Below are positions 417 through 64,000 of a stretch of 64,000 nt of DNA, piece by piece. The DNA is from Macrostomum lignano. Taxonomy: Eukaryota. The position numbers and the translations under genes are program-made. The stretch covers positions 186,001 to 250,000 of the forward strand of contig NIVC01000038.1 in the NCBI GenBank assembly GCA_002269645.1. Direction: 5' to 3'. How positions within the stretch are numbered: the first letter of the stretch is position 1; every line of letters starts with the position of its first letter. Under the pieces are notes generated by a model. The model was given only the letters and a program-made list of their open reading frames with translations, had not been told where the DNA came from and did no database searches.

Positions 417-742
417 GAAATCTCTACCGTCGAAAGGTACGAAATGGCTCCATACGATGTGATCAGCGATGCGGAGACAAAGCCAGATGAAGTCCCGCCT
501 GAGCAGGTTTGCTACTCGCAATCTGTTTGCCTACCAGAAAGAGTTGCGCTGAGCAAACTGTGAGCAGCAATTCCTGCTTCAACCCGCTGTAGGAAGTCGA
601 AACTGCGGGCGGCTCCAATCGGTTCAACAGCGAGCTGTCATCAGCCTACGATGTGATCCCGGACCTGACGGCGAGCCAGAAGCAGCAGAACCAGAGAGCT
701 GCTCAGCAAGTCAAGAGCAATCAAAAAGAGGAGTGCCGCTGA
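417..742 (+). CDS. Gene 1, last two coding exons (cytoplasmic tail) of a Crumbs-like EGF/LamG receptor paralog
   Basis: Exons 417-506 (EISTVERYEMAPYDVISDAETKPDEVPPEQ) and 593-742 (EVETAGGSNRFNSELSSAYDVIPDL...KEECR*), AG/GT bounded and near-identical to the terminal exons of genes 2, 3 and 4. Confidence 0.82.
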
Positions 743-1140
743 CTGCTGACTGCTGACTGCTGCCTGCTGACTGCTCACTGCTGACTGCTGACTGCTGACT
801 GCTGACTGCTGACTGCTGACTGCTGACTTCTGACTGCTGACTGCTGACTGCTGACTGCTGACTGCTGACTGCTGACTGCTGACTGCTGACTGCTGACTGC
901 TGACTGCTGACTTCTGACTGCTGACTGCTGACTGGTGACTGCTGACTGCTGACTGCTGACTGCTGACTGCTGACTGCTGACTGCTGACTGCTGCCTGCTG
1001 ACTGCTGCCTGCTGACTGCTGACTGCTGACTGCTGACTGCTGACTGCTGACTGCTGCCTGCTGACTGCTGACTGCTGACTGCTGACTGCTGACTGCTGAC
1101 TGCTGACTGCTGACTGCTGACTGCTGACTGCTGACCGCTG
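740..1140. repeat. 7-bp (TGCTGAC)n repeat starting at the gene 1 stop codon
   Basis: About 57 units; homologous shorter array at 21743-21945 after gene 2. Confidence 0.95.
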
Positions 1141-1839
1141 AGCTGCTGAAGGTCAGCTGCCAAGTGTGGTGTTGCTGCGGCATGATTGTTTTATGATTGC
1201 AACCAGTTAACTTTTCACCGTTTCATTTCCTGTGGCTTCATGCTTTTTTCAAATAATGCTTTTTTGATCTAACACTAACAATTACTACGGTATCTAGAAA
1301 AACTTTTGTTTAACTTCATTCCCAGCCAGTTTACGTTACTGATATTGTACATGTAGCTCGTAGTGGCCTCTTGTGGCCTCAATAGATTATCTGCGATCCA
1401 ATTAAAATAATTTAATCGCACTGTTTATTTACCTGGTAATAAATCTTTGCACAATGTTCATTTTGAATTTGTTAAATTTCTTTTGTTAATTTGCGTCATT
1501 TCATCACTGTCTTGGGGACGCTGTTTTGGGAGCGCCATCGTTGGGCGCCAAAGTACGATCATAGTTGGTGGGGGAACTGCTAAACTTGGGAACCTGCTGC
1601 GAAAAAGACGCAAAATCTGCAGTGAATTGGGCACCATAGCTAGATCCGGCAGGTTATGGGGATTCAGTCTTCAAAGCACTCACTGGCTACTGGCTAGCCA
1701 ATAAATGGTTGGTGTGCTTTATTCTTTCAACAATAACAAATAATAATTCTTGCGGGCCCTGTTGCGGCGCAGTGACGCAGATTGTAGCTCTATTCCGTCA
1801 TCGAGGAGTCGCGGATACGACAGTCCATCCTGATAGTTA

Positions 1840-2400
1840 CCTCCATAGATTTCAAGAAGGCATTCGACTCGGTCGTCTGATCCCAAAGGTGCGAGAGCAG
1901 CTTGGCACCGCCCTCGTGGCAATGTACCCGGATAAAAAAGCTGCTGGTTCAACACCAAACGGCCTATCGGACTTTTTTGAGACATCCTCTGAAGTTGCCG
2001 TTCCTGTTTGTGCTGGTGCTTGAACGAGTGCTGTGGATTGTTCCTCGGCAAGTCGTGCAGTCCAGGCGGTGGTCGAGACCGTCCTGCTGTACGACCGTCC
2101 GTCCCAGCACGCTGGCCTGCTGCGCACCACCTTTAAGATCAGCGAGTTTTTAACGCGGCAATGCAACGCCGCGTGACGGCCTGGTCCGTCAAAGCGACCT
2201 GTGGTCCAAGCGACCTGTTGCGCCGTCGGCCTACAGCCTACAGCCGGTGCAAGAGTTGCCGCTGCTGGTGCTGCAGTCTACCTACCGGCAAGAGGACATC
2301 GCGCTCTCGGCGTTCCGCGCTCTCGGCGTTCCGTCGACTGTCTGTTGGCTGACGGCCCCCCTTATTTGGTCGGTGGCGCAGCTTTTGTTTGCGACCTGGT
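1840..2400 (+). mobile_element. Heavily deleted RTE-type non-LTR retrotransposon relic
   Basis: SIDFKKAFDSV (RT motif) at ~1841-1873, AVVETVLLY, and a C-terminal RRL...QPVQELPLLVLQ...VDCLLADG-like segment, broken by deletions and frameshifts. Confidence 0.7.
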
Positions 2401-3654
2401 CCAGAAGTGTGCTATGTGACGTTCCTTTTCTAAAGACTGCTTTGTTGTTGTTGTACAAGCAAGTGCTTTTTGATACTTCCTAATTAGAAGCAGTTAAATG
2501 TATGCTTTAGACATTCAAAGTTTTGTTTTACTGTTTGTTTCAATTACAGTGTTACATCGTTTCCGGATTCCGCTCATTTTCGTCCCGTAGCTACCCTTCA
2601 GCACGATCTTTTCCAGGTCTCTAATGCGATTAAAAGGCCTGATATAGTTGTTATTATAGTTTTAACGGCAATTGTTTTGAGGATGGGCGTTGGGTTCATT
2701 AAATGAATATGAAGGCAAACTTCCTCTCAAATGGGTAGCATGTAAATTGCATGGCTTAAGCGAATTAATACAAGCATTCAAGCAAAAATCATCTAATCTC
2801 TGTCTGTGCTTAGCAAATATTTCTGTTCTAAAAATAGCATAATTGACACAGAATTGTTTTTTTCAGTTCAAAACAGGAAGGCTCGGTGTCTAAGACTTAG
2901 TATATAAACACATACAGTCGCATGCTTCTCTATGCATGCTTTCTGTATGTCTCTCACTGCTGCATTGCAGAATAATAAGGCCATTATATTTACGAAATGG
3001 AAGCTTTAAAGAGAAAAATATTTTCTGACAAGCATTGCAGAAACGCTTATTACTTATCCTGTTTTTCGCAGATGTTTTGTTTAAATATGAGTTCTTTACA
3101 GTTTTTACGCATCCATTTCTAGTAAATATCGCATCAGGCTAGCTTTAAAATTTATGCCAAGATAAAACTATTGCTAATAAGTTTATTAGTCATTAAATCG
3201 TTATAGATAATTGGCGTCGTCTTTAACGAGAAGCCGACGGATACGCTGCAGTGTCAATTTGATTGATTGATTGTATTTAGTGCTGTGTATTTATTTGAAA
3301 ATGTGAAACTACGAGTATACTAACACAACAGAAACAGCATTGGAATAGATCATGTAAATTTGGAGGAGGGAGGGGAAGGCAAGTAAGAAGGCAATATCAA
3401 CGGAACCCCCCTTTTTTCAGGCAATCTCGATTTGGCTTTTAAAATAGAAAAACATGGGCAGCGTTGAATGGGGCCTTGGTCGGCGAATGCTGTGCAGCAG
3501 GGCCGTCACCTGCCCTGCCCTGACAACGAAATGGCGCCTGTCCCTGCCTGTCTCCTCTATCAGGATGCTGATCGCTTTGCGCAGAAACGCCACAAAGGTC
3601 TTGATGCCTCCGTACTGGCGATAGATGATCCACGATTCACGACCAGAAGCAGCA

Positions 3655-7940: not shown

Positions 7941-10900
7941 ATGTCGTCCGAAATTCGACTGCCGACATTAATTCTAGTTCTGACGCTGGCTTGGCATCGA
8001 GCTTCGTGTGCTTCAGTTTCAGAAGACTTATCCGCAGGTGAGTTGGGGTTTTAAGGTAGCTTAAATGACTGTTAATAAGTTTTCCACTGCTTTTTAATAT
8101 GAAGGTTCTGACGAGGACGCCAACGAATTGGCGCGGACGAGGCGAGCCGCCTGCAGCGAGGGCGACTGCAAGAATGGCGGCATTTGCTGGCCGGGTGCTG
8201 TGACGTCAAGCACTCCTCCGTGTCTGTGCACTGAGGCGTACACTGGTAAATATTGCACCAATAGAATAAACTTCTGTGCTACATACTCAGGCAGTCCCTG
8301 CCAAAACGGAGGCACCTGCAGCAACACAGACGCGAGCCCCTGGTATCACTGCAGCTGCGTTCCCGGCTACACAGGTGCGTGACCCTTGCTGCAAATCAAA
8401 ATTTGAGCGAGGCGTTATGAAATTTAGGCGATATGAAATTTAGGCGATGTGAAGGAGCGTGCAGAAATTTTAGGCGTTGTGAAATTTAGGCGATGTGAAA
8501 TTAAGGCGTTGTGAAGGAGGCTGCATTTTCGATTTTAGGCGTTGTGAAATTTAGGCGTTATGAAATTTAGGTGATGTGAAGTCATGTGCTTTAGGCGTTG
8601 TGAAATTTAGGTCTTATGAAGCGCCCCCGTCCCGGGAAGCGGGTAATAGGGGGAAGGGAAGTGTTGAACACTTCTAACTGTACAAGCTTCGCAGGAGAGG
8701 GAAGGCGGAGCGCTTTAAATGACTAAGACTAGTCTATTTTTAGAACAATGTTCGGTTACAACCGCAAAGCAGGCCTTAATTATAGCCAGGCTGGCGGAGG
8801 AAAAAGTTATTCTCCTTCTCGATTTATTCTCTTGCTTATATATAAAACATAATCAATATGGCGTACGCGTTTAAACTAATAAAAACACTAGATTATACTG
8901 TAGGCTACTAATCGATACTAAGATTTACTATTAACGGTATAAAAGATTTATTTATGCAGGCACAGAGATGTTTTTAGCGATTTTGAGAAATAGTCGTATT
9001 TACTAAGGCGGTATACGTAAAATGATAGGCAAAAATAGTGACTCTTACAATCTCCAAAATCCCATCTTTGATCTCACAGATCCAATCCATCATTTCAAAG
9101 ATCCCATCCATTACCTCACAGATCCCATCCATTTTCTTACAGATCCCAGCCATCATCTCACAGAACCCATCCATCATCTCACAGATCCCATCCATCATCT
9201 CACAGAACGCATCCATCATCTCACAGATCCCATCTATCATCTCACAGATCTTATCCATCACCATCATCTCACAGATCACATCCATCATCTCACAGATTCC
9301 ATCCATCATCTCACAGAACCCATCCATCATCTCACAGATCTCATCTATCATGCCGCAGAACCCATCCATCGTCTCACAGATCCCATCCATCATCTCACAG
9401 AAAATATCCATCATCTCACAGATCCCATGCATTATCTCACAGAACCCATCCACAACCTCACAGAACCCATCCATCACCATACAGAACCCATCATTCATCT
9501 TACAGAGCCCATCCATCATCTCACAGATCCTAACCATCATCTCACAGATCTCATCCGTTACAGATCCCAACCATCATCTCACAGATTCCACCCATTATCT
9601 CACAGATCCCATCCATCATCTCACAGAACCCATCCATAATCTCACAGAACCCATCCATCATCTCACAGATCCCATCCATCATCTCACAGATCCCATCCAT
9701 CATCTCACAGATCCCATCCATCATCTCACAGATCTCATCCATCATCTCACAGATCCCATCCGTCATCTCGCAGATCCCTTTCATCATCTCACAGATCCCA
9801 TTCATCATCTCACAGATCCCATCCACCATCTCACAGATCCCATCCATCATCTCACAGATCCCATCCACCATCTCACAGCCCCTTCAAAACAGATGAGTTA
9901 TTTTCATTTTCCCTCCTCGTCATCTACATTGGTTTAAAAGTACATTTCGGCAAAGCTACGCGTAAAGCAATTCTCCGCATTGTAAAAATAAGAATTGTCA
10001 ACTGGTCAGTTGGTGTCAGGACACACGCCAGTCAGGACGGCATTCACGTAGAAATGCCTCAGCTGAGGTCTCTGATTATTTTTCTTTCCTTTCGATTTTG
10101 CAATCTGCTGCAGGCACCGACTGCAAGATCAACATTGATGACTGCGCCAGCAAGCCCTGTGCCAACGGCCTGTGCTCAGACTTGGTGAATGACTACAGCT
10201 GCAGCTGCTTCACAGGCTGGGAGGGCAGGAACTGCAACATCAACCACAACGACTGTCCGACGGGCGCCTGCCTCAATGGCGGCAGGTGCATTGATGGCAA
10301 CGGCACGTGAGTTCTTCTTGACTTGACTCAGCTGCTCAGACTTCACAGATTGGATACTGGGGGTTCGGTGCTTGAGGATGGGTTGTGGTTGGGTGCTTAA
10401 AGATGGATTGTGGTTGGGATGGTGCTTTGTTTCGCTATATACGAGTGTAGTCAATGATCGACATGACAAGTTCGAGTCTCGAGTGTTTGTACCGTGCTTA
10501 TAAGAATATTTATTTGCGTTTTTTAGTTTTCCGCCATGTTTTTGATTTTCTTTATTATTTACTTGTAAGCATCTTGAACTGACCATGCAAAATATGGTAT
10601 TGAGCCTAAATAAATGATTATCTGTTACGGGTGAAAGCATAGGGAAGCCTAATCTCCTCAGAAACTGCTGAAAGTTTTCTTAGTACTTGGAGCATATTAA
10701 GCGAAAAATTACTTGAACATGTTCCTCAAACAATTCTGATAGTCCTGCCTGAAAATTTGAGAGCAAAACACATACAGGAGACACGTATTGATTTACCCAA
10801 TGCTGGTCACATCTTCCGATGGGATTCTTCTTAGTCCGATTACAAATTCAAAACAAACACATTCTGGTAAAATGTCAATAAAAAGCAGTCTTGGCTCTCG

Positions 10901-13900
10901 GAGCTAAGAGAAGTTCTTTGCATCAGTATAACTCAAACAAGCCACTTACTTTTTTAGTAAGTGAGATTTGAAAAAGAAATTTGTTAAGAAATTCACTAAC
11001 ACTCATCAAAAGCCAAACATAGCCGAATGAAATCACCATCGTCATTTCAGATTCAGCTGCGACTGCTCTCGCGTCGACTTCCAAGGCGCCACCTGCAGCT
11101 CCAAGATCGATGACTGCGCGTCGAGCCCGTGCCAGCACGGCGGCAGGTGCATCGACGGTGTCAGGAGCTTCACGTGCGACTGCACAGACACGGGATTCGC
11201 AGGTGACAGGTGTCAAAACAACATTGATGACTGCGCCAGCAAGCCCTGCGCCAACGGCCTGTGCTCAGACCTGGTGAAAAACTACAGCTGCAGCTGCTTC
11301 ACAGGCTGGGAGGGCAGGAGCTGCTCAGTGGACACTGACTACTGCCTGTCAGGGCCCTGTCAGAACGGCGGCGTCTGCAGCGACGGAAACTCCACGTGAG
11401 TGGCTCAAAACTGATTGAGTTTTTTTCCTTGGGATAATCTTGCAGTTCTGAATCGTGCTACAGTTTTATCTGCATGGGTGTTTTTAGTTGAGTGCTTGGG
11501 GGTTTTGTTGGGTTTGTGTCGGATTGTAACTTTATTCTATCGTTATAGAGGATGTTGGGTGTTTGAGGATGGGTTGTGATTGAGTGCTTGGGTTGGATTG
11601 TAGTTGAGTGTTTGGGTTGGGTTGTGGTTGAGTGTTTGGGTTGGGTTGTGGTTGGGTGCTTGGGTTGGGTTGTGGTTGAGTGTTTGGGTTGGGTTGTGGT
11701 TGGGTTGTGGTTGAGTGCTTGGGTTGGGTTATAGTTGGGTTGTGGTTGGGATGGTGCTTTGATACGTTATATACGAGTGTAGTCAATGATCGACATGACA
11801 AGTTCGAGTCTCGAGTGTTTGTACTGTCGTATCACGTGACTCAGCGGGTGTACATTGAGTACATTCGCTGTTTTTTTTCGATTGACTGACAATGCTTTAT
11901 TGAGCGTGACTAGTGTGTGTGTTCTTTTAAAACCCTGTGCTTTTATGCATCAATTATTCTTACGTTCACTTATACCAAAAATATAAAAGTCGTCTAGTGA
12001 GCTCAGAGCTCAATACTTTTTTATTTCTCGCACTAACCACTATAGAGTTGTTTTAGTGGCGACGAGGATTGTGGCTGAGCAATGCCTAACCACGCAATCG
12101 GAGAATATGAGGACTCCGAGGAAACCTGGGATGAGTACCAGGAGCGTCTGGAGCAACATTTCCTGGCACAGGACATCACCGACGGAAGTAAAAAGAGGGC
12201 CACCCTGCTGAGCGTCTGCGGTAGGAAAACCTTCCAGTTGGCCAGAAGCCTCTGCTCTCCAGCCAAAGTCGCGGACAAATCCTATGCCGAAATATGCGAG
12301 CTGCTGAGCGCTCATTTCAACCCAAGGCCGAGCGAGATCATTCAGAGGTTCCAGTTCAATAACCGAGTTCAGCGCCCTGGAGAGTCGGTGGCAGAGTTCC
12401 TTGCGGAGCTGCGGAAGCTGGCGGAGTTCTGCAATTACGGCGGGAGCCTGTCTGACATGCTGCGCGACAGGCTGGTGTGCGGCATCGCGGACCAGCAAAT
12501 CCAGCGCCGGCTCCTGATGGAGGCCGAGCTGACCCTCGATACTGCCAAACAGATCGCGCAAGCGGGCGAGTCAGCAGCCAAAAACTGTCAATCGCTGGGC
12601 TCAGCAAAACCTGCGGCAGTGACATCGGCATCGTCAGCGACAGAGAGCGACTCCGTGCTTCGAATGGAACGACAGCGACCGCAAGACAGCCGTCAGTCTG
12701 GAACAGAAGGCCGGCGGCGCTGTTTCCGCTGCTTGTCGACTCGCCATCCGGCAGCCAAATGTCCCTTCGCGGACAAACGCTGTTTCAACTGCAGCAAAAC
12801 CGGGCACACCGCGAAGGCATGCAAGGCGGTGACACAGCAGCAGCAAATGCACCAGCTGGTTGACCAGCAGCCTTCAGACAGCAGCTCAGCTCAGGCCGCC
12901 GAGCCGCCCAGCCCAGCCGAGGTCGCTTATCCCTTCTACCATCTGGGTGCTGACCGATCGCAGGCCAGGTTTCCTCCAATCGTGACCTCTGTCTTCATCG
13001 AGGAGAAGCGATTCGAGATGGAGGTGGACACAGGGGCATCCGTATCGCTGATGTCCGAACGTACGTTCAAGGAAAACCTGGGAAGCCGGATGTCTCTGTC
13101 TGCGTCAACGGTTCAGCTCAGTACGTACACCAGTCAAACCGTCCGTGTTCTCGGTTAGCTCTTCGTACGCGTGCGAGCTTCGCAAGGTTCGGCCGAGGAA
13201 CAGCTGCCGCTGCTGGTTGTCGCCGGTTGTGGTCCGAGCCTCCTTGGTCGAGATTGGCTACACCGCCTGCGGCTGGACTGGCAATCTATCAAGCGGATGG
13301 AAGAAGCTGATGCAGCCAAGGAGTTGCTACAGGAGTTCTCAGAAGTCTTCCAAGGTCTGGGCGAGTTCAGCGGCAAGCCGGTGTCCATCAGTCTGAAGGA
13401 GAACGCCAGACCAAGGTTCTATAAGGCGCGGCCGGTGCCGTTTGCGCTGTGCGAGAAGGTTGAGCAGCAGCTGCAGAAGGAAATCGACCAAGGAATCCTG
13501 GTGCCGGTCAAAAACTCCGACTGGGCGTCCCCGATCGTGCCGGTAATGAAGTCCGACGGCAGCGTGCGCATCTGCGCTGATTTCAAGCAGTCGGTCAACG
13601 CAGCTATCCGGCCTGAGGCTTACCCGCTGCCGAACATCGACGAGCTATTTTCACGCTTGGCTGGCGGTAAGAAGTTCTCAAAACTGGATCTGAGCCAGGC
13701 ATTTTCGCAGCTTCCCCTGGATGAGGATGCTCAAGAGCTCTGTACCATCAACACCTCGCTGGGACTTCTTCGCTACACCCGTCTGCCTTTCGGCGTGTCG
13801 ATCGCCCCAGCGTGTTTCAGCGGGTGATGGACAGCTTACTGCGAGGAATTCCGCACTCTGCATCCTTCATCGATGATGTCATCATCACAGGCGAAGACGA

Positions 13901-16900
13901 CGCCAGTCACCTCCGCAACCTGAGAGCAGTTCTGAAGGTCTTCAAGGAGTCCGGGCTGACCTGCAAGCTTGAGAAGTGCACCTTTTTCAAGGACGAAGTC
14001 ACATACCTAGGCCACCGCATCGACGCCGAAGGGCTGCACCCGCTGGACGATAAGGTTCGAGCTGTGCTGGACGCGCCTGCACCGACTAACACGACTCAAC
14101 TGAGGAGCTTCTTGGGCCTCATTAACTACTACGGCAAGTTTTTGCCAAATCTCTCTAGTGTTCTGGCCCGCTGCACAGGCTCTTGGAGAAGAACACAAGG
14201 TGGCAGTGGGATCGCAGCGAGGCGGACGCGTTCAGCGCGGCAAAGCAGCTGCTCACGCACCCCAGCGTCCTAGACCACTATAACGCTGCAGAAGAGCTCT
14301 ACCTGGAGTGCGACGCATCGCAGTACGGGCTCGGTGCCGTCATATTCCACCGTCGGGACGGCATGGACAAGCCAATCGCGTACGCTTCGCGCAGCCTCAG
14401 CTTAGCAGAGAAAAATTACTGCCAGCTGGAGAAGGAGGCCTTGGCGCTGGTTTTCGGTGTGAAAAAATTCCATCACTATCTGTTTGGTCGGGAGTTCAAC
14501 CTGTTGACCGACCACCGGCCGCTTCTCGGCCTTCTAGGACAAGAGCGACCGCTTCCAGCCCTGGCTTCCGGCCGAGTCCAACGATGGGCGTTGCTGCTGA
14601 CCGCGTACCGGTACCGTCTTGTACACCGCACCGGGGTCTCCATGCTCCGAGCAGACGCCTTAAGCCGCCTTCCTGCATCAGCTGGCCCTAAGGAAGTTCC
14701 GGTGCCTCCAGAAGTCGTGCAAGTGATGGACTGCCTAGACGCCGGGCCGGTGACTTCATCAGACGTGCGCACCTGGTCCCGCCGCGACCCTACATTGTCA
14801 CGCGTAATTCTTTACTGTCTCTCGGCCTGGCCAGACCGGGATTCCTGGACTTCCGATTTGGTGCCCTTCGGAAAACGGCACCAGGAATTGTCAGTTCAAG
14901 ACGGCTGTGTTTTCTGGGGCAGTCGTGTCGTCATTCCTGAAGTCGGCCAAAGCCGCTTGCTCGACTGCCTGCATGTTGGACACCCTGGAGCATCCCGGAT
15001 GAAGTCGCTTGCCAGAAGTTACATATGGTGGCCGGGCATGGATCGTGACATTGAGGCCAAGGCAGCAAAATGCATGGACTGCCAGAAGCACCAGTGAGCC
15101 GGACCAGAAGCTCCGCTGCAGCCATGGTCGCTAACGGCAAGGCCTTGGTCGAGAATCCACGTAGATTTTGCCGGTCCCGTCCAAGGTCGGATGCTGCTGG
15201 TGGTGGTCGACTCCTTCTCAAAGTGGCTCGATGTGTACGTGACGACAGCGACGACGACCTTCGCAACAGTGGAAAAGCTGCGACAGAGCTTCAGCACTCA
15301 TGGCCTACCGGAGACCATCGTCTCGGACAATGGGCCCTGCTTTGCCAGCTTCGAGTTCGACGCCTTTTGTGCCAAGAACGGAATTCGGCACATCCGCACG
15401 CCACCCTACCACCCGGCTTCCAATGGCCAAGCTGAGCGAGCAGTGCAAACTGTTAAGAACTCCCTGAAGAAGCAGGCCAATGACGGCAGCTCCCTGGAGA
15501 CCCAGCTGGCCAGATTCCTGCTCAGCTACCGTACTACTCCGCATCCAACGACGGGAGGGGCACCGTGTGAGCTGCTGATGCACCGGACGCTGCGTAGCCT
15601 GCTCGACGTACCGAGGCCAGACATAGCCAAGCGAGTTCTCGAGAGCCAGGAAAAGCAGAAGCAGCAGCACGACTCGGGCGCACAAAGACGAGTCTTCGAG
15701 AAGGGCGAGGCGGTGTTCGTTCAAGACTTTAGCCGCGGGAACGAGCGAACCTGGACATCGGCTATGGTGGTCGGCAAGGAGGGCAGCAACTGGTACAAGT
15801 GCATTCTGCGGAACAACCGGATGGTGCGGCGGCACACAGAACAGATGCGAATCGACAAGATTTCCCAGCGGCCTGGGCCGCTGCAGACGAATCCGGAATT
15901 TAGTGGTGAGCTCAGGCCTCCACTACCGCAACCGTTGGTTCCGCCGCCACCGCCGCTGCAGCTGCCACCGCCACAGCCACCGTCGCCGCCGCCGCCGCCG
16001 CCAACGCCGCCGCCGCCGCCAACGCCGCCGCCAACGCCGCCGCCACCGTCGCAGCCTCGACCGCTGCAACTTCCAGATCAAGGACCAGCACAAGCTCTCA
16101 GAAGATCAAGCAGAGCTCGATCGATTCCCGTCCGCCTAAACTACGATGGGAGAGGTCGTATCGCGTGACTCAGCGGGTGTACATTGAGTACACTCGCTGT
16201 TTTATTTTATCGATTGACTGACAATGCTTCATTGAGCGTGACTAGTGTGTGTGTTCTTTTAAAACCCTTGTGCTTTTATGCATCAATTATTCTTACGTTC
16301 GCTTGTACCAAAAATATAAAAGTCGTCTAGTGAGCTCAGAGCTCAATACTTTTTGATTTCTCGCACTAACCACTATAGAGTTGTTTTATGTACCGTGCTT
16401 ATAAGAATTTTTATTTGCGTTTTTTAGTTTTCCGCCATGTTTTTGATTTTCTTTATTATTTACTTGTAAGCATCTTGAACTGACCATGCAAAATATGGTA
16501 TTGAGCCTAAATAAATGATTATCTGTTACGGGTGAAAGCATAGGGAAGCCTAATCTCCTCAGAAACTGCTGAAAGTTTTCTTAGTACTTGGAGCATATTA
16601 AGCGAAAAATTACTTGAACATGTTCCTCAAACAATTCTGATAGTCCTGCCTGAAAATTTGAGAGCAAACACATACAGGAGACACGTATTGATTTACCCAA
16701 TGCTGGTCACACCTTCCGATGGGATTCTTCTTAGTCCGATTACAAATTCAAAACAAACACATTCTGGTAAAATGTCAATAAAAAGCAGTCTTGGCTCTCG
16801 GAGCTAAGAGAAGTTCTTTGCATCAATTTAACTCAAACAAGCCACTTACTTTTTTAGTAAGTGAGATTTGAAAAAGACATTTTTTAAGAAATTCACTAAC

Positions 16901-45975: not shown

Positions 45976-45976
45976 G

Positions 45977-48255: not shown

Positions 48256-48306
<51 letters not shown>

Positions 48307-51300
48307 TGACTGACTGACTGACTGACTGACTGACTGACTGACTGACTGACTGACTGACTGACTGACTGACTGACTTACTTACTGACATGTCAAAACCTGA
48401 TTATTGACTTGCAGGGCTCAGCGATGGCGCGGATTCGTTGGCGCGGTCGAGGCGAGCCGCCTGCAGCGAGGGCGACTGCAAAAATGGCGGGGTTTGCTGG
48501 CCGGGTCCTGTGTCGGAAAGCACCCCTCCGTGTATGTGTCCTGATGCGTACACTGGTACTTATTGCACTAACAGAATAGACGTCTGTGCTTCAACTCCCT
48601 GCCAAAACGGAGGCACCTGCAGCAACACAGACGCGAGCCCCTGGTATCGCTGCAGCTGCGTTCCCGGCTACACAGGTGGGTGACCTGCTGCAAATCGTAA
48701 TTGAAATTCAAATCATTCTGAATTTATCCCGAATACGAAAATCTCCGCCAAATATTTCTTTGACAGAGATTCTTTAGTAGTGATATTTTCAAGCAAAAGT
48801 AATTGATAATAACATTCGTGAAAATAAAACACCAAATAAAATATTAAGTTGCTTGCACCCCTATCTCTCCATTGTCTACCTCTAAAACAATATACACAAT
48901 CTACCATTGTGTCACTCAGTGTTGATCTCTACTCACAGAACCCGGCTACCATCTCACAGATCCCAGCCATCTCACAGATCCCAGCCATCTCACAGATCCC
49001 AGCCATCTCACAGATCCCAGCCATCTCACAGATCCCAGCCATCTCACAGATCCCAGCCATCTCACAGATCCCAGCCATCTCACAGATCCCAGCCATCTCA
49101 CAGATCCCAGCCATCTCACAGATCCCAGCCATCTCACAGATCCCAGCCATCTCACAGATCCCAGCCATCTCACAGATCCCAGCCGTCTCACAGATCCCAG
49201 CCATCTCACAGATCCCAGCCATCTCACAGATCCCAGCCATCTCACAGATCCCAGCCATCTCACAGATCCCAGCCATCTCACAGATCCCAGCCATCTCACA
49301 GATCCCAGCCATCTCACAGATCCCAGCCGTCTCACAGATCCCAGCCATCTCACAGATCCCAGCCATCTCACAGATCCCAGCCATCTCACAGATCCCAGCC
49401 ATCATCTCACAGATCCCAGTCATCTCACAGATCCCAGCCATCTCACAGATTCCAGCCATCTCACAGATTCCAGCCATCTCACAGATCCCAGCCATCATCT
49501 CACAGAACCCAACCAAACATCTTAGCAGCTCTTTCAATCTTTCAGTCTCTTATATCTACCTCGTTTTTTAGTATGAAAAGCAGTTGCTACCATTGTAAGA
49601 AGACATCAGTTGTTAACAAGAAATACAAGCCAGTCAAGCCAGAACTGCACTCCCACAGAGACAGATATACTAAAATCTCAAATTATTTTACCATATTTTC
49701 TATTCCGTAATTTTCATTTATTCAGGCACTCACTGCGAGATCAACATTGATGACTGCGCCAGCAAGCCCTGCGCCAACGGCCTGTGCACGGACCTGGTGC
49801 AAAACTACAGCTGCAGCTGCTTCACAGGCTGGGAGGGCAGGAACTGCTCAGTGGACACTGACTACTGCCTGTCAGGGCCCTGTCAGAACGGCGGCGTCTG
49901 CAGTGACGGAAACTCCACGTGAGTGACTCAGGGATAAGTCCGCGTTTTTTTTCTTTTCTTTGAATGATGTTGGCTTTCTGATTTGTATTTTATCAGCATG
50001 CGTGTTTGTGCTCGTAGCTGAGTGTTTGCGGTCCCTTTATAAACAAATAATTAATGAAGGAACATTCATTTTCGAGCGCTTCTATCGCAGTTTTAAGCGC
50101 TATCGGGCTCAGAGGGTGATTGGGAGGGCGGTGTTGGCCTCCGGCAGACTCAGAGTCTGGGTTTGAGACTGGCTGAGAGAAAATAGAGAAAAACTAAACT
50201 CCTTGACGGAGAGTCGCTTTCACAAGACCAAAATTTCGCAACGCCGAAAGGCGCCGAAAACTATTGTAAGGTCCTTTATAAGACCGAAACTTCTTAAAAC
50301 CGAAATTTCACATCATAGAAAACTCAATATAAAAAGGATCATGCAGAATATTCGGTGTAATGAAATTTCGGCTTTATGAAGTTTCGGTCTTGTGAAGTAA
50401 AATGGATGAGAGGCGAATCACGTGAGACTTACTTCAAGCAACTGACGTCAACTCCTTGTCTAAAAAGGATCAGATGCCGTAGCACGTGACCTCAACCATA
50501 AAAACGGGCCAAACAGTGCAGTAAGACTTGTCATGGGACGAAGTTAGATGGCAAGGGAAAGGCGAGCCACAAGTGAAACCACGAGTGAGCGCCTGAAAGG
50601 AGCGAACAAAAAGCAGGCCACGGCAACGAAGACCAGTGGCTGCAAACAGAGAGCAATGAACAATCGGGGCGGGCAGGGAGCAGACAGCACGACGCTGGGG
50701 AGGAGGGGCAAGACTGCACACAAGCGCCACATGGCGGGCAAACCAAAATGGGAGCTGTGCGCTGCCCACTAAACTGCAAAACCTAACAGTTAATCTAGTG
50801 GCTCACTACAAAATAAACTTCGATTCTTCACTTTACGAGTAAATAATGATATATATTTTTCATGCAAAAAACACAGGTTCACCTGCGACTGCTCTCGCGT
50901 CGACTTCCAAGGCGACACCTGCAGCTCCAAGATCGATGACTGCGCATCAAGTCCGTGCCAGCACGGCGGCAGGTGCATCGACGGTGTCAGGGGCTTCACC
51001 TGCGACTGCTCTGCCACCGACTTCTACGGACCGAACTGCCAAAGCCGCATTGACGACTGCGCCAGCAACCCGTGCAGCCACAACGCCACCTGCACTGACG
51101 GGCACAGAGACTTCAGCTGCAGCTGCTTCAGCGGCTACTCGGGAAAGACCTGCTCCGATGACGAGCCGGACTGCTCGCCGAATCCGTGCCAGTTCGGTGG
51201 CGCCTGTCTGGAGCGCAGCAACCCGGCTCTGTATGGAAAGTCACCGCTGCCAGCGCCGTTCAACGGCAGCTTCAGCAACGCGCTGGCTGCCGGATTCGTC

Positions 51301-54300
51301 TGCCTCTGCCCACATGGTGAGGAGGTCCGGTATCATATTTACTGTGCAGATTCCAATCTACAATAATTTTTATCTGACTGCTACAGGTACCTACGGAGAA
51401 AACTGCTCCATCAATCCGAACGACTGTCTGGACCCGGCCACCAACCGCAGCGTGTGCGCTCACGCGTCAAACTGCACGGACGGCCTGGCCTCATTCACCT
51501 GCCACTGCCTGCCCGGCTACGAGGGCCCGACCTGCTCAGCCGACATCAACGAGTGCGAGCGGTTCGGACAGCCGTGTAGGAACGGAGCCGTCTGTAAGGA
51601 CCTGGTAGCGGATTATGCCTGCACCGGCTGCCCCGCTGACTACGGAGGCAAAAACTGCAACGTCAGACTGACTGGCTGCGACTCCAGCCCGTGCCACATT
51701 AATGCTACTTGCGAGCCTCTGCTTCTTCAGGAAGTTCCATCACTTGCTCACGGCTACCGCTGCACCTGCAAGCCTGGCTGGTCTGGACCGCAGTGCAACG
51801 AGACCACTCTGGCGTCATTCAACGGGACGTCCAGTTTCAGCGTCAATTTTAACACAACAGCTGACTGCACCTTCGAGCTGTCGTTCCGCACGACTCTCGC
51901 CCACTTCGATCTGGTCCGGCTCTCGTCTCACTGGGGAGCCATCCAAGTCGGCGCTCACAACTCCAGTCTCGTGCTGTTGTTCGTCAATGCCTCATCGTCT
52001 GTGATTGGTCGAATCGCTTGGCCAATCAGTGACAGCTTAGCCTCTACTGATTGGCTGACGCTGTCGATCTCGCTGACCAATGGCAGAGCGACATTGAGTC
52101 GCAGTGAGTCAGGAGTGAGTCAGATGCCTGGAGCACAGCTGGTCGACGGACTGTCGGACTCATTCAAGCCGAACAGTCGAATGTCGGTTCGTGTCGGCGG
52201 CGAGAGCGGATCCGACATCGACGGCGGCGGCTTCCGCGGCTGCGTGAGAGACCTGCGGCTCGTGACGGACGATTCGATGATCGTCGCTACGGAGACCACG
52301 ACAGAGTCGAGCAACGCGACCTGGGGAGTCTGCAGTCGGTCGGTGCAGTGCGGCAGTCCGTCGCCTTGTGAAGCAAAGACGAGCTCGATGTGCTCAGATG
52401 TGTGGAACGACTTTGTGTGCCACTGCGCTGCGGACTTCGGAGGCCGGCGCTGCTCCGTTGAGCTTCCATCGTTCTCACTGGGTGTGGGCGGCAGCGTGTC
52501 ATCAGCGATCTTCGCGTCTGCAGCAGGTGTGTCAAGTGTGTATGGCGGAGACTCGTGGACGATTGAGCTGAGGCTGGTGACTTTGTCTCGAGGAGCGTTT
52601 CTGCTGCTGCTGGGCGACCCGAGCGACTCGGCGACCACTCCGAGACTGCTCGCTACGGTCAGTGTCATTGTGGTACTCCTCTGTAGACGTTCAAGGTGTT
52701 TAACGTCAGTTTTTGCTTTATATCTTTTCAGATCGATCACTCTGGCCGTATGTCCGCCCAGTTACTGTACGGCAACGGCTCCCTCATCGCAGCGCTGACG
52801 TCCTCAGACTCGGTGGCCACCGGCAGCTTCGTCTCCGTGAAGATCTCCGTGTCGATATCGGGTCGCTCGCTGTCGCTGTCAGTGTCATCTTCAGTCAGGT
52901 CGGCATCGCTGAGCAATGCGAGTCCGCTGCCGCAGCTGTCAGGCCAGCTCATCATCGGCGGCTTCAGCGGTCTTCGAGCAGCTCCGGCTCCGTCGCCCGA
53001 TTCCACAGGCCGGGGCGCTTCGAGAACAAAGAGATCGGCAGATGTCTCGCTGTCTAGAGTTGCTTCAGCGGCAGGAAATGTCACCGCGTTTCGGGGCTTG
53101 CTGAGGTCAATCAAGGTGAACGGTGACACTCCACTGATTCTGGTTGCTGGGATTGACGGCTTCGAGGGCCTCACAGGTGCCGTGGTAGCCAGCGAGTCGA
53201 CAGAGATTGTCCGAGGCATTTTCAACAATACCGTGTGCGAAGAGTTTCGACCTTGTAGAAATGGAGCGACCTGCACTAACGGGCTCTACTATTCGTACCG
53301 GTGAGTTTATTGTCATGTCATCAGTTAAGCAACTGCTGCAGTCCATGGCTAATCTGCTTCGATACCACTGAATGCCTCAATTTCAGCTGCGTTTGCCACC
53401 CGGGCTACTCGGGCGAGGACTGCTCCGTCGACCATCCCGACTGCAGCTCGAATCCGTGCGGCGCCGACTCGTTTTGTCTGGAGCGAAGCATTGAAGATTT
53501 GTACAGCAATGCGTCCAGCCTGGCGCCGTTCAACGGCTCCTTCAGCTACTCGAAGGCTGCAGGCTTTGAGTGCGTGCGCATAATGGCACCGAATGAGACT
53601 GCCACCAGTAGTGAGGCTGCCGCCAGTAAGTAGTGAGGCTGCCGCCAGTAAGTAGTGAGGCTGCTGCCAGTAAGTAGTGAGACTGCCGCCAGTAAGTAGT
53701 GAGGCTGCCGCCAGTAAGTAGTGAGGCTGCCGCCAGTAAGTAGTGAGGCTGCTGCCAGTAAGTAGTGAGGCTGCCGCCATTAAGTAGTGAGGCTGCCGCC
53801 AGTAAGTAGTGAGGCTGCCTCTGTCTTTGAGGAGTGAAGTACAGTCAGAGCAATCGAATTTCAGTAACATCTGCTCGATTTGGTCAACAAAATAGTCATT
53901 CACTTAAAGTGAATATCCGCAGTTTATTGCCCGCTAGCCACTGACAAAAAACCATTGCGCTTTGTATCCTAAACTTTCATCAGACAATGAAAGATGTTTC
54001 AAAAACTATTGTAATCTGAAAAAACTTAGCTATATTTTTGGCTCGATGTTAAAGATCCGTTTCAATGTTTAAGAGGCCTAGTAAAGAGGTCTCGTAAATG
54101 CAGATTTGTTCGAGTTTCGAATTTCGAATTAGAAAAAAGGGCCAAGCACCATGGCAAAAACACCTTGCAACGTTGCTCGTACTTCAAAAGTCTCATTCAA
54201 TTGAACCCATTACCTATTAAAGGTGGCTTTTTTCCCACCTGGGCCATTTCTTTGGCAACCTTCATATTTGGAGTTCTTCTGTCAGTTTCCGTGTTTCTCC

Positions 54301-55303
54301 TGCTGCTCAACCGGCATCGGAACGTGAGTCCCTGCTCGGCCAGTTCCTTCAACAAATCCTATATACTATATGTCTAATTGTCATCATAAATATAAATTTC
54401 AGGGCAAACTGTCACTTGGATATTTCGAGAGACAGGTAATCCGTCAATTATTAAAGGAACGGTGCCAATTGTTGTATATTTACTGATTAAATCCTGTTGC
54501 TTCACCATTAAGGCCCCTGTTATGGAAAATGTGAAACGAAGAAGTGCAGCGAAGGTTTTGAGCGATCTGAAAAACCGACTGAGTTCGCGAAATGAGCACA
54601 ACTACCTGACATCTGACAAGCATTCGGTAAGGCCTCTGTTCACATGCAGTCATGCTGATAGGGCCTCATCTCTGCTGTCTCATAGAAAGAGCTTTTGTAT
54701 TAGAAAAGGTTTTATTTGCAAACTCTATTTTAACTCGTAGAATTTAAAACTAATCTAGCAAAAAAATAACTCCAAACAGTTGTAATGCTGTTGGTTTTGA
54801 AACGGAAAGCGAAATTAACAAACTAGGTGAACTTTTGATAGATACTGCATAGATGGCTAGAAAGTTAGATAGATACATACTCATGGATAGATACGTTTGC
54901 TATAAATAGACAATGTATTGATATTATGTTTTCTTAACTCTAATTAGTAATAAATGCTGTAATAAATTTTCAGCAAATCTCTACCGTCGAAAGATACGAA
55001 ATGGCTCCATACGATGTGATCAACGATGCGGAGACAAAGCCAGATGAAGTCTCTCCTGAGCAGGTTTGCTTCTAGCAATTGATTTGTTTGCCTACCAGAA
55101 AGAGTTGCGCTGAGCAAACTGTGAGCAGCAATTCCTGCTTCAACCCGCTGTAGGAAGTCGAACCTGCGGCCGGCTCCAATCGGTTCAACAGCGAGCTGTC
55201 ATCAGCCTACGATGTTATCCCGGACCTGACAGCGGGCCAGAAGCAGCAGAGGCAGAAAGCTGATCAGCAGCTCAACAATTATCAACCGGATGAATACTGC
55301 TGA
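47053..55303 (+). CDS. Gene 4: Crumbs-like type-I receptor (SP, propeptide, 10 EGF, LamG, EGF, LamG, EGF, truncated EGF, TM, Tyr-motif tail), ~1185 aa
   Basis: Exons 47053-47149 (MPMLSWRFLQHLLLLTVAYQSGAVSVSSELSD), 48415-48675, 49726-49918, 50877-51316, 51387-52657, 52732-53300, 53387-53625, 54223-54323, 54403-54435, 54513-54626, 54974-55063, 55154-55303; phases join, total 3558 nt, no internal stop seen. Confidence 0.85.
47355..47800. repeat. 20-bp minisatellite AGACAGGGGCGCCC(A/G)ACAAG (gene 4 intron 1)
   Basis: About 22 units; degenerate homolog at 60270-60610. Confidence 0.95.
47991..48386. repeat. (TGAC)n microsatellite (gene 4 intron 1)
   Basis: About 100 units; shorter homolog at 60825-60932. 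Confidence 0.97.
48935..49515. repeat. 18-bp derivative (ACAGATCCCAGCCATCTC) of the 21-bp intron-2 minisatellite
   Basis: Highly homogeneous 18-bp units with occasional 21-bp units. Confidence 0.95.
50211..50419. mobile_element. Possible MITE-like inverted-repeat element in gene 4 intron 3
   Basis: TTCACAAGACC(A/G)AAA near the left end is inverted as TTTCGGTCTTGTGAA near the right; outer GAGTCGC/GCGAATC; no clear TSD. Confidence 0.35.
53626..53818 (+). repeat. 22-bp splice-donor minisatellite (gene 4)
   Basis: About 9 units starting at the pre-TM donor. Confidence 0.95.
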
Positions 55304-59940: not shown

Positions 59941-61690
59941 ATGCTGTCTTGGCGCTTTTTGCAGTACCTGCTATTGCTGACAGTTGCATATCAGTCTGGT
60001 GCTGCATCAGTCTCGAATGGATTGTCTGATGGTGAGCAATTTGCAAATTATGAGCTTGTGCGTTAGTAAAACGAAAAAAGGAAGTTTAGTGGAGGCTTGG
60101 ATAAAGTCAGGGGGAGGCAGGAGGGCCGTGGCTTTCAGGCTCCTCCAGTAATAATGGAGCTTATGCAAAACCTAAACATGAGCTCAACTTTTGCTACGAG
60201 TGTTTTTCAGACGTGGCATTCTAGGAGACAGGGACAGGGGTAGGGGCGCCAAAAAAGAGTCAGTGGCGCCCAACAAGAGACAGGGCGCCAACAAGAAATA
60301 GGGGCGTCAACGAGACAGGGGTGCCCAACAAGAGACAGTAGCGCCCAACAAGAGATAGTGGCGCCCGACAAGAGACAGGGGTGCCCAACAAGAGACAGTA
60401 GCGCCCGACAAGAGACAGTAGCGCCCGACAAGAGATAGTGGCGCCCGACAAGAGACAGGGGTGCCCAACAAGAGACAGTGGCGCCCAACAAGAGACAAGG
60501 GCGCCCAACAAGAGACAGTAGCGCCCGACAAGAGATAGTGGCGCCCGACAAGAGACAGGGGCGCCCAACAAGAGACAGTGGCGCACAACAAGAGACAGGG
60601 GGCGCCCACCAAGTCACCAAATGTTGGCGTCCCTTAAGGTTGCTTCCATGAAGATCTCAAACGAAATTAATGTGCGAGAGACTTTCAAAAACTCGAATTT
60701 CATTAGAGGTCAAATTTAACTAGTAAGTACAAAAACTAGTTTCTGTGAATTAGAGATAAAACTAGACGATTTAACTGCGTTACGCGAAGCGAAAAGACTA
60801 AAATCCTAGCAGTAGAATCCCAAAGTGACTGACTTGAGTGAGTGAGTGACTGACTGACTGACTGACTGACTGACTGACTAACTGACTGACTGACTGACTG
60901 ACTGACTGACTGAGTGACTGACTGACTGACTGAGATCTCTAAGGGCCTCCATTTTTCAGTACCTCTGCCACAGCAATCGGTTTTTGGCTCTCCAGTCGAA
61001 TTCCTGTCGAAGCGGAACTTTAATTACGTGCTATTTTTATTTACATCAATAAAAAAACCTTTTCACAGCTCGCAAGTGTGAAAACGGGGCCTGTGTCCCA
61101 CTCCTAACGCATTAAAATGCAACAGTCAGGCTGGTTACTATGGTAACATATTAAATAATCGCACCTTTTTCAAATAATACAATTTCAATCTATTTTAAAT
61201 ATTCAGGCCAACGTTGCGAATCGAATGTTGCCGATTGCTCGTCCAATCCTTGCACCAAAGGAGGCCAAGGAAAGATCTGCCTGGAGCGCAGCAACCGGGC
61301 TCTGTACGGCATGTCGGATCTGCCATGACCTTTCAATGAAGTTTCAGCTTTTCGGTGGCTCTCGGCTTTATATTCGGTGTCAATTAGATGTCAGAATGTC
61401 AAATCGGATGTCAAAGGTTATTTATTTAGTATTTTTCACCGTGAATGTCACTGACTGGACACGTTGTTCATATCCAGCAGCTACAAGGAGCTCTCGATTT
61501 TACAAATCCAACTTCACTTGTCAGACATGCGCCGGCACCACGAGATCAAGCTGCCAGTGTGACATGGGTATCTCTAGCTCTGTCACCATCGTGCTTGGAG
61601 TTGCCTTCGGAGCACTGGGCATCGTGGTGCTGTCGGTTATTGCACCTGCCGTCTTTACTGCAGCGTATCGAACTGTGAGACAGAAGCACG
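59941..61690 (+). pseudogene. Gene 5: compact LamG-less EGF-TM paralog, disrupted
   Basis: Signal exon 59941-60031 (MLSWRFLQYLLLLTVAYQSGAASVSNGLSD, paralog of gene 4 exon 1); EGF exon 61069-61142 (frameshifted); exon from 61207 GQRCESNVADCSSNPC...CLERSNRALYGMSDLP* (TGA 61326-61328); TM VTIVLGVAFGALGIVVLSVIAPAVFTAAY at ~61580-61670. No tail exons found. Confidence 0.55.
60270..60610. repeat. 20-bp minisatellite homolog (gene 5 intron 1)
   Basis: GCGCCC(A/G)ACAAGAGA(C/T)AG units. Confidence 0.9.
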
Positions 61691-61871
61691 GAGATGCCTG
61701 CTTTTCCCATCGCTTTTGCAAGAATCATATTTCACAACGTTGATTTTTTTCATTTTTAAGCCAACCTTTAACAGAAGTTTGGATTTAAAACACTGGTGAA
61801 GTTTGCGCCTTGTGAAATTTTGCTGTTATAAAATTTAGATGTTACGTAATGAAATGAAGTTTACATGAGCA

Positions 61872-62250
61872 GTTTAGGTGTTATGCAGTTTTGATGTTAT
61901 GCAGTTTAGGTGTTATGCAGTTTAGGTGTTATGCAGTTTAGATGTTATACAGTTTAGGCGTTATGCAGTTTAGGTGTTATGCAGTTTAGATGTTATACAG
62001 TTTAGGCGTTATGCAGTTTAGATGTTATGCAGTTTAGGCGTTATGCAGTTTAGGTGTTATACAGTTTAGGTGTTATGCAGTTTAGGTGTTATGCAGTTTA
62101 GGTGTTATGCAGTTTAGGTGTTATGCAGTTTAGGTGTTATACAGTTTAGGTGTTATGCAGTTTAGGTGTTATACAGTTTAGGTGTTATGCAGTTTAGGTG
62201 TTATGCAGTTTAGGTGTTATGCAGTTTAGGTGTTATTCAGTTTAGGTGTT
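61872..62250. repeat. 16-bp minisatellite TTTAGGTGTTATGCAG
   Basis: About 23 units; related TTTAGGC..TGAAA units at 6715-6810 and 8415-8620. Confidence 0.92.
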
Positions 62251-62719
62251 GTAAAGTTTAAGCACCAGCTTTTTTCTTCACCTAAAACAACTTTATTATT
62301 GCAAAATTTTTACCTGACTACTCAAAAGTTCTGTAAGTAGTAAGCTTAGATTAATTATAGTCTAAAGCAGACAACATCAGTGCTGTTTCACTGTGCATTT
62401 TTATCTGCAGTTGTCAAAAATTATTCGATGCTTTTAGCGTCAAAACATTTCTGTTTTGCTTGAGCCCTAGTCAGCTGCTTGAAAATTTCGAATTGTGTGT
62501 TATATATGTGTGTGACTGTTTTTAATTACTTGATTTTTTATTAACTGGCATGGCCAATCCGTTTCTCATTTCCATATTGATTCTTTCATATGCAGAAATA
62601 ATATCAGTCCGCATATTCTAATATTTCAATTGATTAAAATTCGCTTTAATTTGCTTTTCAGCTTCTCAAATTTGTGCAAATCTTAAACCAGATTAAGCCT
62701 CAGCCTGAGCTCGTCCCGA

Positions 62720-64000
62720 ATGTCGTCGAAAACTTGATCGCCGATTTTAATTCTACTTCTGGCGCTGACTTGTCATCGAGCCTCGTCTTTTTCGGTTTCG
62801 GAAGGTTTATCCGCAGGTGAAGTGGGGGTTTTGTCGTAGCTAAATTTGACAGTTAATAGTTGTAGCCTTATTGAGTATAAATTTCCGGCTGATTTCTAAT
62901 CTGAAGGTTCTGAGGAGGACGCCAACGAATTGGCGCGGTCGAGGCGAGCCTACTGCAGCGAGGGCGACTGCAAGAATGGCGGGACTTGCTGGCCGGGTCC
63001 TGTGACGTCAAGCACTCCTCCGTGTCTGTGTCCTGAGGCGTACACTGGTACTCATTGCAATATTAGAATAGACTACTGTTCGACCTCAATTTGGTACAGT
63101 GGCACATCAAGAAGTCCGTGCAAAAACGGAGGCACCTGCAGCAACACAGACGCGAGCCCCTGGTATAACTGCAGCTGCGTTCCCGGCTACAATGGTGGGT
63201 GACCCTTGCTGCAAATAGAGAAACTTCAAACTTTAAAAATGTTTCTTTAATTCCTATCACAGAATCCCATTATCAACTTTATTCAGCTTAACTAATTTGA
63301 TCAGAAAAGGCTGCCTTTAAGGCAGAAGTATGTAACAAAACACTATTTTTTTCTGAGAAGTTATAGACATTAAAATTAAATTAAAATTAGACTTGTACGA
63401 GAGTAGCAAAAGTAAAGTTTAATTTTGAAGAAAATTGGCAAAATCTTTACTCGATATCTGTCTGCCTCAAAAACAAAGATCAATTTCATCGTATCAGCCA
63501 CCTCGCATAACCCAACCCATCCATTATCTCATATAATCAATCCACCATCTTACAGAACCCATCCACCATCTCACAGAACCCATCCACTATCTTACAGAAC
63601 CCATCCAACGTCCCACAGAACCCATTAACCATTTCACAGATTCCATCCATCATCTCGCTCAAAGGCTCCAGAACTGATGAATGTTTTTCATTTTTCTAAG
63701 CCATCGGTTTAAAGGTAAAATCCTGAAAAGCTACAAGTAAAAAGTCAACCCTCATCACAAGGACCACCGTATATAGCTATATACAGTAGTCCTTGCCTCA
63801 TCATTGCAAAATACATTGATTGTTAACTGGCCGGTTGGAGGCAGCACAAAAGACAGCCCGGACGGCATTCGCACAGCAAAGGCTAAACTGAAGTTTCTGA
63901 TTTTTCCTTCCTTCGATTTTGCAATCTGCATGCAGGCACCGACTGCGAGATCGACATTGATGACTGCGCCAGCAATCCATGCGCCAACGGCCTGTGCTCA
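62720..64000 (+). pseudogene. Gene 6: 5' part of another Crumbs-like receptor paralog, nonsense at codon 6
   Basis: Exons 62720-62816 (97 nt, MSSKT*SPILILLLALTCHRASSFSVSEGLSA; TGA 62735-62737 where genes 2/3 have CGA), 62907-63194 (RSRR plus two EGF), and 63936 to the window end. Confidence 0.7.

Follow-up and report, generated by a model that had tools for sequence, protein, structure and literature searches.

The window analysed here, 64,000 nucleotides of Macrostomum lignano contig NIVC01000038.1 (positions 186001-250000; assembly GCA_002269645.1, Mlig_3_7), carries part of a tandem array of genes whose predicted products join a Crumbs-like ectodomain to a tail unlike that of Crumbs. Crumbs is the product of a low-copy polarity gene, and what is new at this locus is the expansion of crumbs into a tandem array with an orphan tail; the Crumbs family itself is known. 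The closest protein matches to the window in a database search were M. lignano proteins at 74-93% identity, and the DNA is typical of the species, with short introns, many mini- and microsatellites, a Ty3/gypsy long terminal repeat (LTR) element and a long interspersed nuclear element (LINE). Self-comparison of the window revealed a repeating unit of roughly 13-19 kb. We built gene models by hand from tblastn matches and splice sites, and obtained the following units.

417-506 and 593-742 (stop included), plus strand: last two tail exons of copy A, 100% identical to residues 515-593 of PAA92815.1/P0007; the body of the gene lies upstream of the window.
7941-21749, plus strand: copy B, intact, 13 exons, 1307 amino acids, open frame, every junction GT-AG.
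7941-8037 (signal peptide), 8105-8374, 10114-10306 and 11051-11395, plus strand: B exons 1-4.
16951-17390 and 17463-18736, plus strand: B exons 5-6 (EGFs, LamG1, EGF, start of LamG2).
18813-19381 (rest of LamG2, EGF) and 19471-19709 (last EGF and stalk), plus strand: B exons 7-8.
20738-20847 (transmembrane [TM] helix), 20932-20964 (33-nt microexon), 21041-21154, 21420-21509 and 21600-21749 (stop), plus strand: B exons 9-13.
33714-40982, plus strand: copy C, a young pseudogene that has the same tail and belongs to the single-LamG type; ectodomain 85-90% identical to paralogue P0013.
33714-33810, 33877-34142, 35276-35468, 36065-36292, 37761-38247 and 38324-38886, plus strand: C exons 1-6.
38951-39030, 39840-39949, 40027-40059, 40130-40243, 40657-40746 and 40833-40982, plus strand: C exons 7-12.
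47053-55303, plus strand: copy D, intact, 12 exons, 1185 amino acids, open frame, GT-AG junctions.
47053-47149 (a different signal-peptide exon), 48415-48675, 49726-49918, 50877-51316, 51387-52657 and 52732-53300, plus strand: D exons 1-6.
53387-53625, 54223-54323 (TM), 54403-54435, 54513-54626, 54974-55063 and 55154-55303, plus strand: D exons 7-12.
59941-61750, plus strand: remnant F, consisting of a D-type signal-peptide exon (59941-60031) and, from 61207, a decayed exon for the last EGF, stalk and TM helix, seen by tblastn and translation.
62720-64000, plus strand: copy E, cut by the end of the window, with exons at 62720-62816, 62907-63194 and 63936 onward.

The units stand head to tail in the order A (tail exons), B, C, D, remnant F and the start of E. 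An earlier note on this DNA, made from the sequence alone, had counted six head-to-tail units with two intact, and this agrees with what we find in the window, where B and D are open. The array is bigger than those six units: in the 54 kb upstream of the window we found another two intact copies, Y and Z, with open gene models and GT-AG junctions. Y is ~97% identical to B, and Z is ~97% identical to D. The 10 kb preceding Y contain no family exon. The order is thus at least Y-Z-A-B-C-D-F-E, which makes at least seven genes and a remnant over at least 108 kb.

Four copies (Y, Z, B and D) are intact, three (A, C and E) are disabled and F is a fragment. Upstream of the window, the large LamG1 exon of copy A has lost 7 bp, which puts it out of frame. 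In exon 2 of copy C we found a 1-bp deletion at ~33902 and a TGG-to-TGA change at ~33959; once the deletion is repaired, this TGA is the sole internal stop. The signal-peptide exon of copy E has TGA at codon 6, where copy A has CGA, and the EGF/TM exon of remnant F holds an in-frame stop and a frameshift. Intact copies, copies with fresh lesions and a fragment therefore sit side by side, as expected under the birth-and-death evolution that had been proposed for the family. First exons are of two unrelated types, encoding MPMLSWRF... in D, Z and F and MSSEIRLP... in Y, A, B, C and E, such that the first exon of D is unrelated to that of B. Upstream of copies A and E there is also a remnant or copy of the other signal-peptide exon type.

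B and D share one layout: signal peptide, EGF array, LamG, EGF, LamG, EGF, TM helix and a tail of 133 amino acids. Pfam found EGF and Laminin_G_2 domains in B, and between 16948-19901 of B and 50874-53817 of D nucleotide identity in the self-comparison is 94%. There are ~13 EGFs before LamG1 in B and ~10 in D. This difference arises because B, like Y, carries an internal tandem duplication of an EGF exon and part of the preceding intron (10372-11395 versus 11695-11825 plus 16389-17390; 96% identity between 10488-11301 and 16389-17204), which adds three EGFs relative to D and Z. The membrane-proximal last EGF is paralogous to the EGF with the insert ahead of LamG1, and it is followed by a hydrophobic TM helix of 24-27 residues. 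Pfam detected the second LamG, and the first was marginal (E 0.12). We therefore modelled LamG1 with AlphaFold2 from the 403-residue exon product and 18 homologous rows (mean pLDDT 74.5). In a Foldseek search the central beta-sandwich of the model matched laminin alpha2 LG5 (TM-score 0.70), neurexin LNS, agrin and perlecan LG domains; by this model, the LamG fold of the first LamG is confirmed.

Where does this ectodomain come from? The earlier note had described it as colinear with Crumbs, CRB1 and CRB2, and the strings that it quoted (CLERSNQALYG...FSYALAAGFVCLC, YGGKNCSVKLTGC, HGYRCTC and CNETTLASLNG) are all present in B. In BLASTP, B aligned with lizard CRB2 as a single colinear high-scoring segment pair of 1080 residues at 32% identity (E 7e-135), running through the first EGFs, the insert-bearing EGF, the GGKNCSV-LTGC junction, LamG1, EGF, LamG2 and the next EGF. 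Of the matches that spanned ~75-95% of the query, nearly all bore the name Crumbs, CRB1 or CRB2 or, under another name, ended in ERLI; those from outside Macrostomum all look like Crumbs proteins. The matches to Notch, Jagged and fibropellin were limited to the EGF part. An ERLI terminus was present in 84 of the 125 retrieved proteins, none of them an M. lignano paralogue. The PDB copy that we searched held no Crumbs ectodomain structure for comparison. We conclude from these alignments that the ectodomain of the array proteins descends from Crumbs.

In keeping with this ancestry, the array proteins share with Crumbs, CRB1 and CRB2 the signal peptide, the EGF array, the GGKNCSV-x-LTGC linker, LamG1, EGF, LamG2, EGF and a single TM helix, as well as the long-insert EGF with the pattern C-x-ERSN-x-x-YG...FSY-x-x-A-x-GF-x-C-x-C. 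However, they have two LamG domains, whereas CRB1 and CRB2 have three, and they lack the C-terminal EGF block; LamG1 and LamG2 are the only LamG types in the window, in which we found no LamG3-like exon. They also differ from Crumbs in being without the 37-residue tail, its GTY-x-P-x-x-E FERM motif and its ERLI end, and in being many tandem copies rather than few genes. In other animals crumbs is typically found as one to three genes.

The tail that stands in place of the Crumbs tail is encoded in copy B as follows.

20932-21749, plus strand: tail module of copy B; NRHRN comes from the end of the TM exon and the remainder from four small exons.

This tail extends 133 amino acids past the TM helix, 3.6 times the length of the Crumbs tail, and contains five tyrosines, which matches the ~130 residues and five tyrosines read earlier from the sequence. 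The same tail is found in all copies for which the 3' end was available, which leaves out only E and the fragment F. Its termini differ among copies, being ...QPEECC in B and ...QPDEYC in D, with EECR also found. In no frame did we find an ERLI-type terminus that belongs to a copy. A profile of 36 distinct canonical 37-residue Crumbs tails scored the new tail at -1.5 bits; with a score below zero and no ERLI terminus, the canonical tail is indeed absent. Nor does the tail contain the FERM motif GTY-x-P-S...E; it has only LGY, in the 33-nt microexon. This in-frame microexon (20932-20964 in B, 40027-40059 in C and 54403-54435 in D) encodes GKLSLGYFERQ with its membrane-proximal tyrosine. It is included in the GenBank models and missing from the UniProt models P0121, P0123 and P0126; either prediction overlooked it or it is subject to alternative splicing.

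A phmmer search with the tail against 1.84 billion representative proteins returned one true relative, an M. lignano fragment, together with a spurious TPR protein, and a word-index search returned three M. lignano fragments. Neither search found a homologue outside M. lignano, in libraries that possibly lack other Macrostomum transcriptomes. Pfam and a PDB sequence search found nothing on the tail, and Rfam found no RNA genes. On present data the tail thus appears, from these searches, to be an orphan restricted to the species, and the family is lineage specific, as had been proposed. AlphaFold2 predicted the TM helix confidently and placed one low-confidence helix in the tail, APVLENAKRRSAAKVLSDLRDRLSS. 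Past this helix, both YDVI motifs included, pLDDT is ~45-52. The tail is predicted to be disordered, as expected of a tail working via short motifs.

Perhaps these are still ordinary Crumbs polarity proteins whose tails have drifted, serving apical organisation via FERM and PDZ partners through a juxtamembrane basic stretch and LGY? The ectodomain is clearly Crumbs, and the juxtamembrane NRHRNGKLSLGYF has a basic cluster with a tyrosine near the GTY position. Moreover, none of the recovered M. lignano members ends in ERLI, hence some member presumably does the polarity job. However, the ERLI function could come from a CRB3-like short protein, which is invisible to an ectodomain query. The negative profile score, the length of the tail and the absence of the LGY microexon from several deposited models all speak against drifted Crumbs tails, and the ...EECC and ...DEYC ends do not form a hydrophobic PDZ ligand like ERLI. 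We consider this explanation unlikely.

Among the tyrosine motifs of the tail are APYDVI and SAYDVI, 36 residues apart. All five tyrosines are conserved in all six copies, which means little because the six copies are too similar. We compared the tail with 200,000 shuffles of itself. SAYDVI fits the immunoreceptor tyrosine-based inhibitory motif (ITIM) consensus [S/I/V/L]-x-Y-x-x-[I/V/L], at least one match to which also arises in 18% of the shuffles, and 20% of the shuffles contain at least two YxxPhi matches. A repeated identical Y-x-x-x tetrapeptide occurred in only 0.27% (p about 0.003). A classical immunoreceptor tyrosine-based activation motif (ITAM), with two YxxL/I 6-12 residues apart, is excluded because the YDVI motifs are 36 residues apart. 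It is the duplicated YDVIxD, and that only, which makes phosphotyrosine signalling by the tail plausible, and an AP-2 sorting signal would fit the YDVI motifs equally well.

Are the ectodomain and the tail maintained by selection? The ratio of nonsynonymous to synonymous substitution rates (dN/dS) was 0.33-0.57 overall in every pair of intact copies, significantly below 1 (p<1e-4). For the LamG domains the ratio was 0.25-1.3 and never significantly above 1 in LamG1 or LamG2. In the tail exons it was 0.22-0.58 among A, B, C and D, with a significant nonsynonymous deficit in four of the six pairs, and the tail comparisons with Y and Z agree. We conclude that selection keeps both ectodomain and tail as coding sequence. 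Synonymous divergence (dS) between B-type and D-type copies is uneven along the gene, ~0.2 in the N-terminal EGFs and the tail and 0.02-0.05 in LamG2, a pattern that points to gene conversion.

These data bear on the proposal that the array is a diversified recognition system like immune and allorecognition clusters, in which the copies would form a repertoire of specificities for self/non-self, mate or pathogen, signalling via ITIM- or ITAM-like tyrosines. A tandem array with gene birth and death is what such a system would show, SAYDVI fits the ITIM consensus with YDVI present twice, and several other tyrosine-containing tails occur in the wider family. However, dN/dS is below 1 overall and never significantly exceeds 1 in LamG1 or LamG2, and we found no diversifying selection or hypervariable ectodomain patch within the array, where low divergence limits power. 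Across the paralogues of the wider family, ectodomain divergence stays at only 3-20% until the last third of LamG2, then rises to 40-55% and gives way to unrelated TM and tail sequences. Such a late jump is what swapping of 3' modules onto a homogenised 5' core would produce, and it does not fit a hypervariable binding site. With a motif spacing that is not that of an ITAM and an ITIM-like match that chance often supplies, we regard a specificity repertoire as quite improbable, and this part of the earlier note gained no backing from the analysis.

In that wider family, other M. lignano paralogues have one, two or three LamG domains, and tandem clusters of them lie on two other contigs. One cluster (NIVC01000114.1:876662-911915) contains a LamG3 exon, tail exons of the P0009 type, the P0012 gene and a second set of P0012-type tail exons; the other (NIVC01001300.1:244029-296378) comprises an EGF gene lying upstream, P0003 (32 kb) and the beginning of a further copy. 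The paralogues (P0003/P0005/P0013, with ...PQEVFF ends; P0004/P0010; P0012; P0008/P0009) resemble the array genes in being tandem and in sharing 74-91% identity over the EGFs, LamG1 and most of LamG2. They differ in their one to three LamG domains and in their tails, which are unrelated to that of the array, and the tails fall into at least five mutually unrelated classes in all. The window holds no exon of the EVFF type or of any other tail class. We asked if the ...KPVPQEVFF tails of P0003, P0005 and P0013 might be diverged Crumbs tails (compare KPPPEERLI); their scores against the canonical-tail profile are negative, and we rejected this. Our searches of the literature for Macrostomum with Crumbs, for Crumbs with flatworm or ERLI, and for the gene identifiers found no report of the array family.

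The window also contains two retrotransposons.

11825-16388, plus strand (sense): Ty3/gypsy LTR retrotransposon in intron 4 of B, with gag, reverse transcriptase, RNase H and integrase by Pfam; target-site duplication TGTAC.
23051-26779, minus strand: non-LTR retrotransposon (LINE) in the B-C spacer, with endonuclease, reverse transcriptase and RNase H by Pfam; not a member of the gene family.

The LTR element is 4.6 kb long, with LTRs at ~11826-12055 and 16155-16388 that are 95.7% identical, and its gag, reverse transcriptase, RNase H and integrase reading frames are split over several frames. We considered recombination between the LTRs of paralogues as the origin of the duplicated segment around it. 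This was rejected: the TGTAC duplication is intact and the paralogous site at 10480-10495 is uninterrupted, which shows a simple insertion into one copy of the internal exon-plus-intron duplication. The LINE is absent from the paralogous spacer site after copy A (2230/2261), which dates the units apart.

Satellite repeats accompany the genes. In every copy a 22-bp minisatellite, with unit CAGTAAGTAGTGAGGCTGCCGC, begins precisely at the donor site of the intron that follows the last ectodomain exon (19691-20539 in B, ~39 units; 39017-39440 in C, ~19; 53607-53819 in D, ~10). Each unit has a consensus GTAAGT donor, and the frame is open from the first only. A (GCTGACT)n microsatellite lies at or overlaps the stop codons of the copies (738-1149, 21750-21950, and after 40982 and 55303), and the C-terminal residues (EECC, EECR, DEYC) vary as if its boundary shapes the C-terminus. 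The longest open reading frames of the window on both strands (32071-33290, 44553-45974 and 9059-9878/34481-35034) are artefacts of minisatellites and not genes; the long minisatellites include a 15-mer (x81), a 23-mer (x62) and a 21-mer (x39).

Could the array be largely an artefact of assembly, or a set of functionless, decaying duplicates in a recently polyploid, repeat-rich genome? Mlig_3_7 is redundant through recent polyploidy, with ~180 Mb in blocks at least 95% identical (PMC5730564). The pairs Y/B and Z/D are ~97% identical, half of the units are damaged and one deposited gene model is chimeric. However, the units are structurally distinct. B alone carries the LTR element, the LINE is confined to the B-C spacer, the lesions are not the same, minisatellites vary in length and copy number, the first (signal-peptide) exons vary too, and both one-LamG and two-LamG types occur. 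Everything lies on one PacBio-assembled contig, and purifying selection is significant in every pair of intact copies. We judge it very unlikely that artefact or decay accounts for most of the array. Given how alike Y/B and Z/D are, part of it may have arisen by recent segmental duplication or, with lower probability, by an assembly join.

GenBank models on Mlig_3_7 derive from a genome-guided RNA sequencing (RNA-seq) assembly (PMC5730564), and they use exactly the tail exons of the array. Hence, that no copy is transcribed is unlikely. B exons 5-13 are identical to the C-terminal 1005 amino acids of PAA92814.1/P0128, and the small tail exons and the 33-nt microexon are thereby confirmed. No intronless transcript contigs were found for P0121 and P0124.

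We therefore favor the following reading, which we hold to be probable: the array represents a subfamily of crumbs paralogues that is confined to Macrostomum and has multiplied in tandem, with a shortened ectodomain and a new tail, and it encodes a surface protein that acts via motifs in that tail. Each functional copy encodes a type I membrane protein in which the first two thirds of the Crumbs ectodomain, counted from the N-terminus, are kept. Gone are LamG3, the EGFs of the C-terminal block and the GTY/ERLI tail of 37 residues; a duplicated insert-bearing EGF, a new TM helix and the 133-residue tail stand in their place. Copies arise, are homogenised and are destroyed by unequal crossing-over and gene conversion. 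At the cell surface the protein might use its Crumbs-type ectodomain for adhesion or ligand binding, uncoupled from the Crumbs partners Pals1/PATJ and FERM proteins. The disordered tail would then act through short linear motifs, of which the two YDVIxD may dock SH2 proteins when phosphorylated on tyrosine, be recognised by AP-2 as YxxPhi sorting signals, or do both.

Several observations weigh against this reading. The tyrosine content of the tail is ordinary (5/133), its ITIM-like and YxxPhi matches are within chance, and, the copies being so young (dS 0.05-0.2), little can be read from the conservation of any single motif. With 92-97% identity between copies, RNA-seq reads map to more than one of them. 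One deposited model, PAA92814.1 (BOX15_Mlig000024g2, 1313 amino acids), joins Y exons 1-4 to B exons 5-13 across 66 kb, skipping Z and A (NIVC01000038.1:141560-207749); near-identity of the paralogues has most likely produced a chimeric transcript model here. The sense-oriented LTR element in the intron of B could truncate B transcripts. Finally, the ~97% similarity of Y and Z to B and D could come partly from assembly of homeologous copies, because Mlig_3_7 holds the near-identical blocks noted above.

A bolder version would take the Crumbs ectodomain in Macrostomum as a modular receptor toolkit, with arrays at several loci built on one EGF-LamG core and at least five tails, of which the YDVI-tail array would be the tyrosine-motif branch for cell-cell, mate or self/non-self recognition. 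We offer this as a long shot.

How does the array compare with known systems? CRB1-B is a Crumbs isoform without the ERLI end, and so is mammalian CRB3-CLPI (PMC2064851). As in the array, a Crumbs-family protein has its ERLI end replaced, which in these isoforms gives different partners and localisation. However, they arise by alternative splicing of one gene and have short ends, whereas the array has the replacement as a fixed feature of separate genes, in the form of 133 residues of unrelated sequence. Draper, CED-1 and MEGF10 are single-pass engulfment receptors with an EGF-repeat ectodomain and a disordered tail that works via tyrosine motifs. They may be functional analogues, in their way of working only: the array proteins have no homology to them beyond generic EGF repeats and lack NPxY, ITAM spacing and an EMI domain.

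If the tail is a mere sorting signal, or if the copies are redundant, the locus would be an ordinary lineage-specific expansion in a duplicated, repeat-rich genome. It is also a clean example of module exchange in a tandem array, where gene conversion affects the 5' two thirds and the 3' modules are distinct. Few animal polarity determinants are as conserved as Crumbs. What it does is generally ascribed to the 37-residue tail, and the role of the large ectodomain is poorly understood. In M. lignano a Crumbs ectodomain has been kept under selection, multiplied and joined to different tails, which amounts to a natural experiment on the ectodomain's own role. As M. lignano is a laboratory model with RNA interference and transgenesis, the question of what the ectodomain does is directly testable in this animal.

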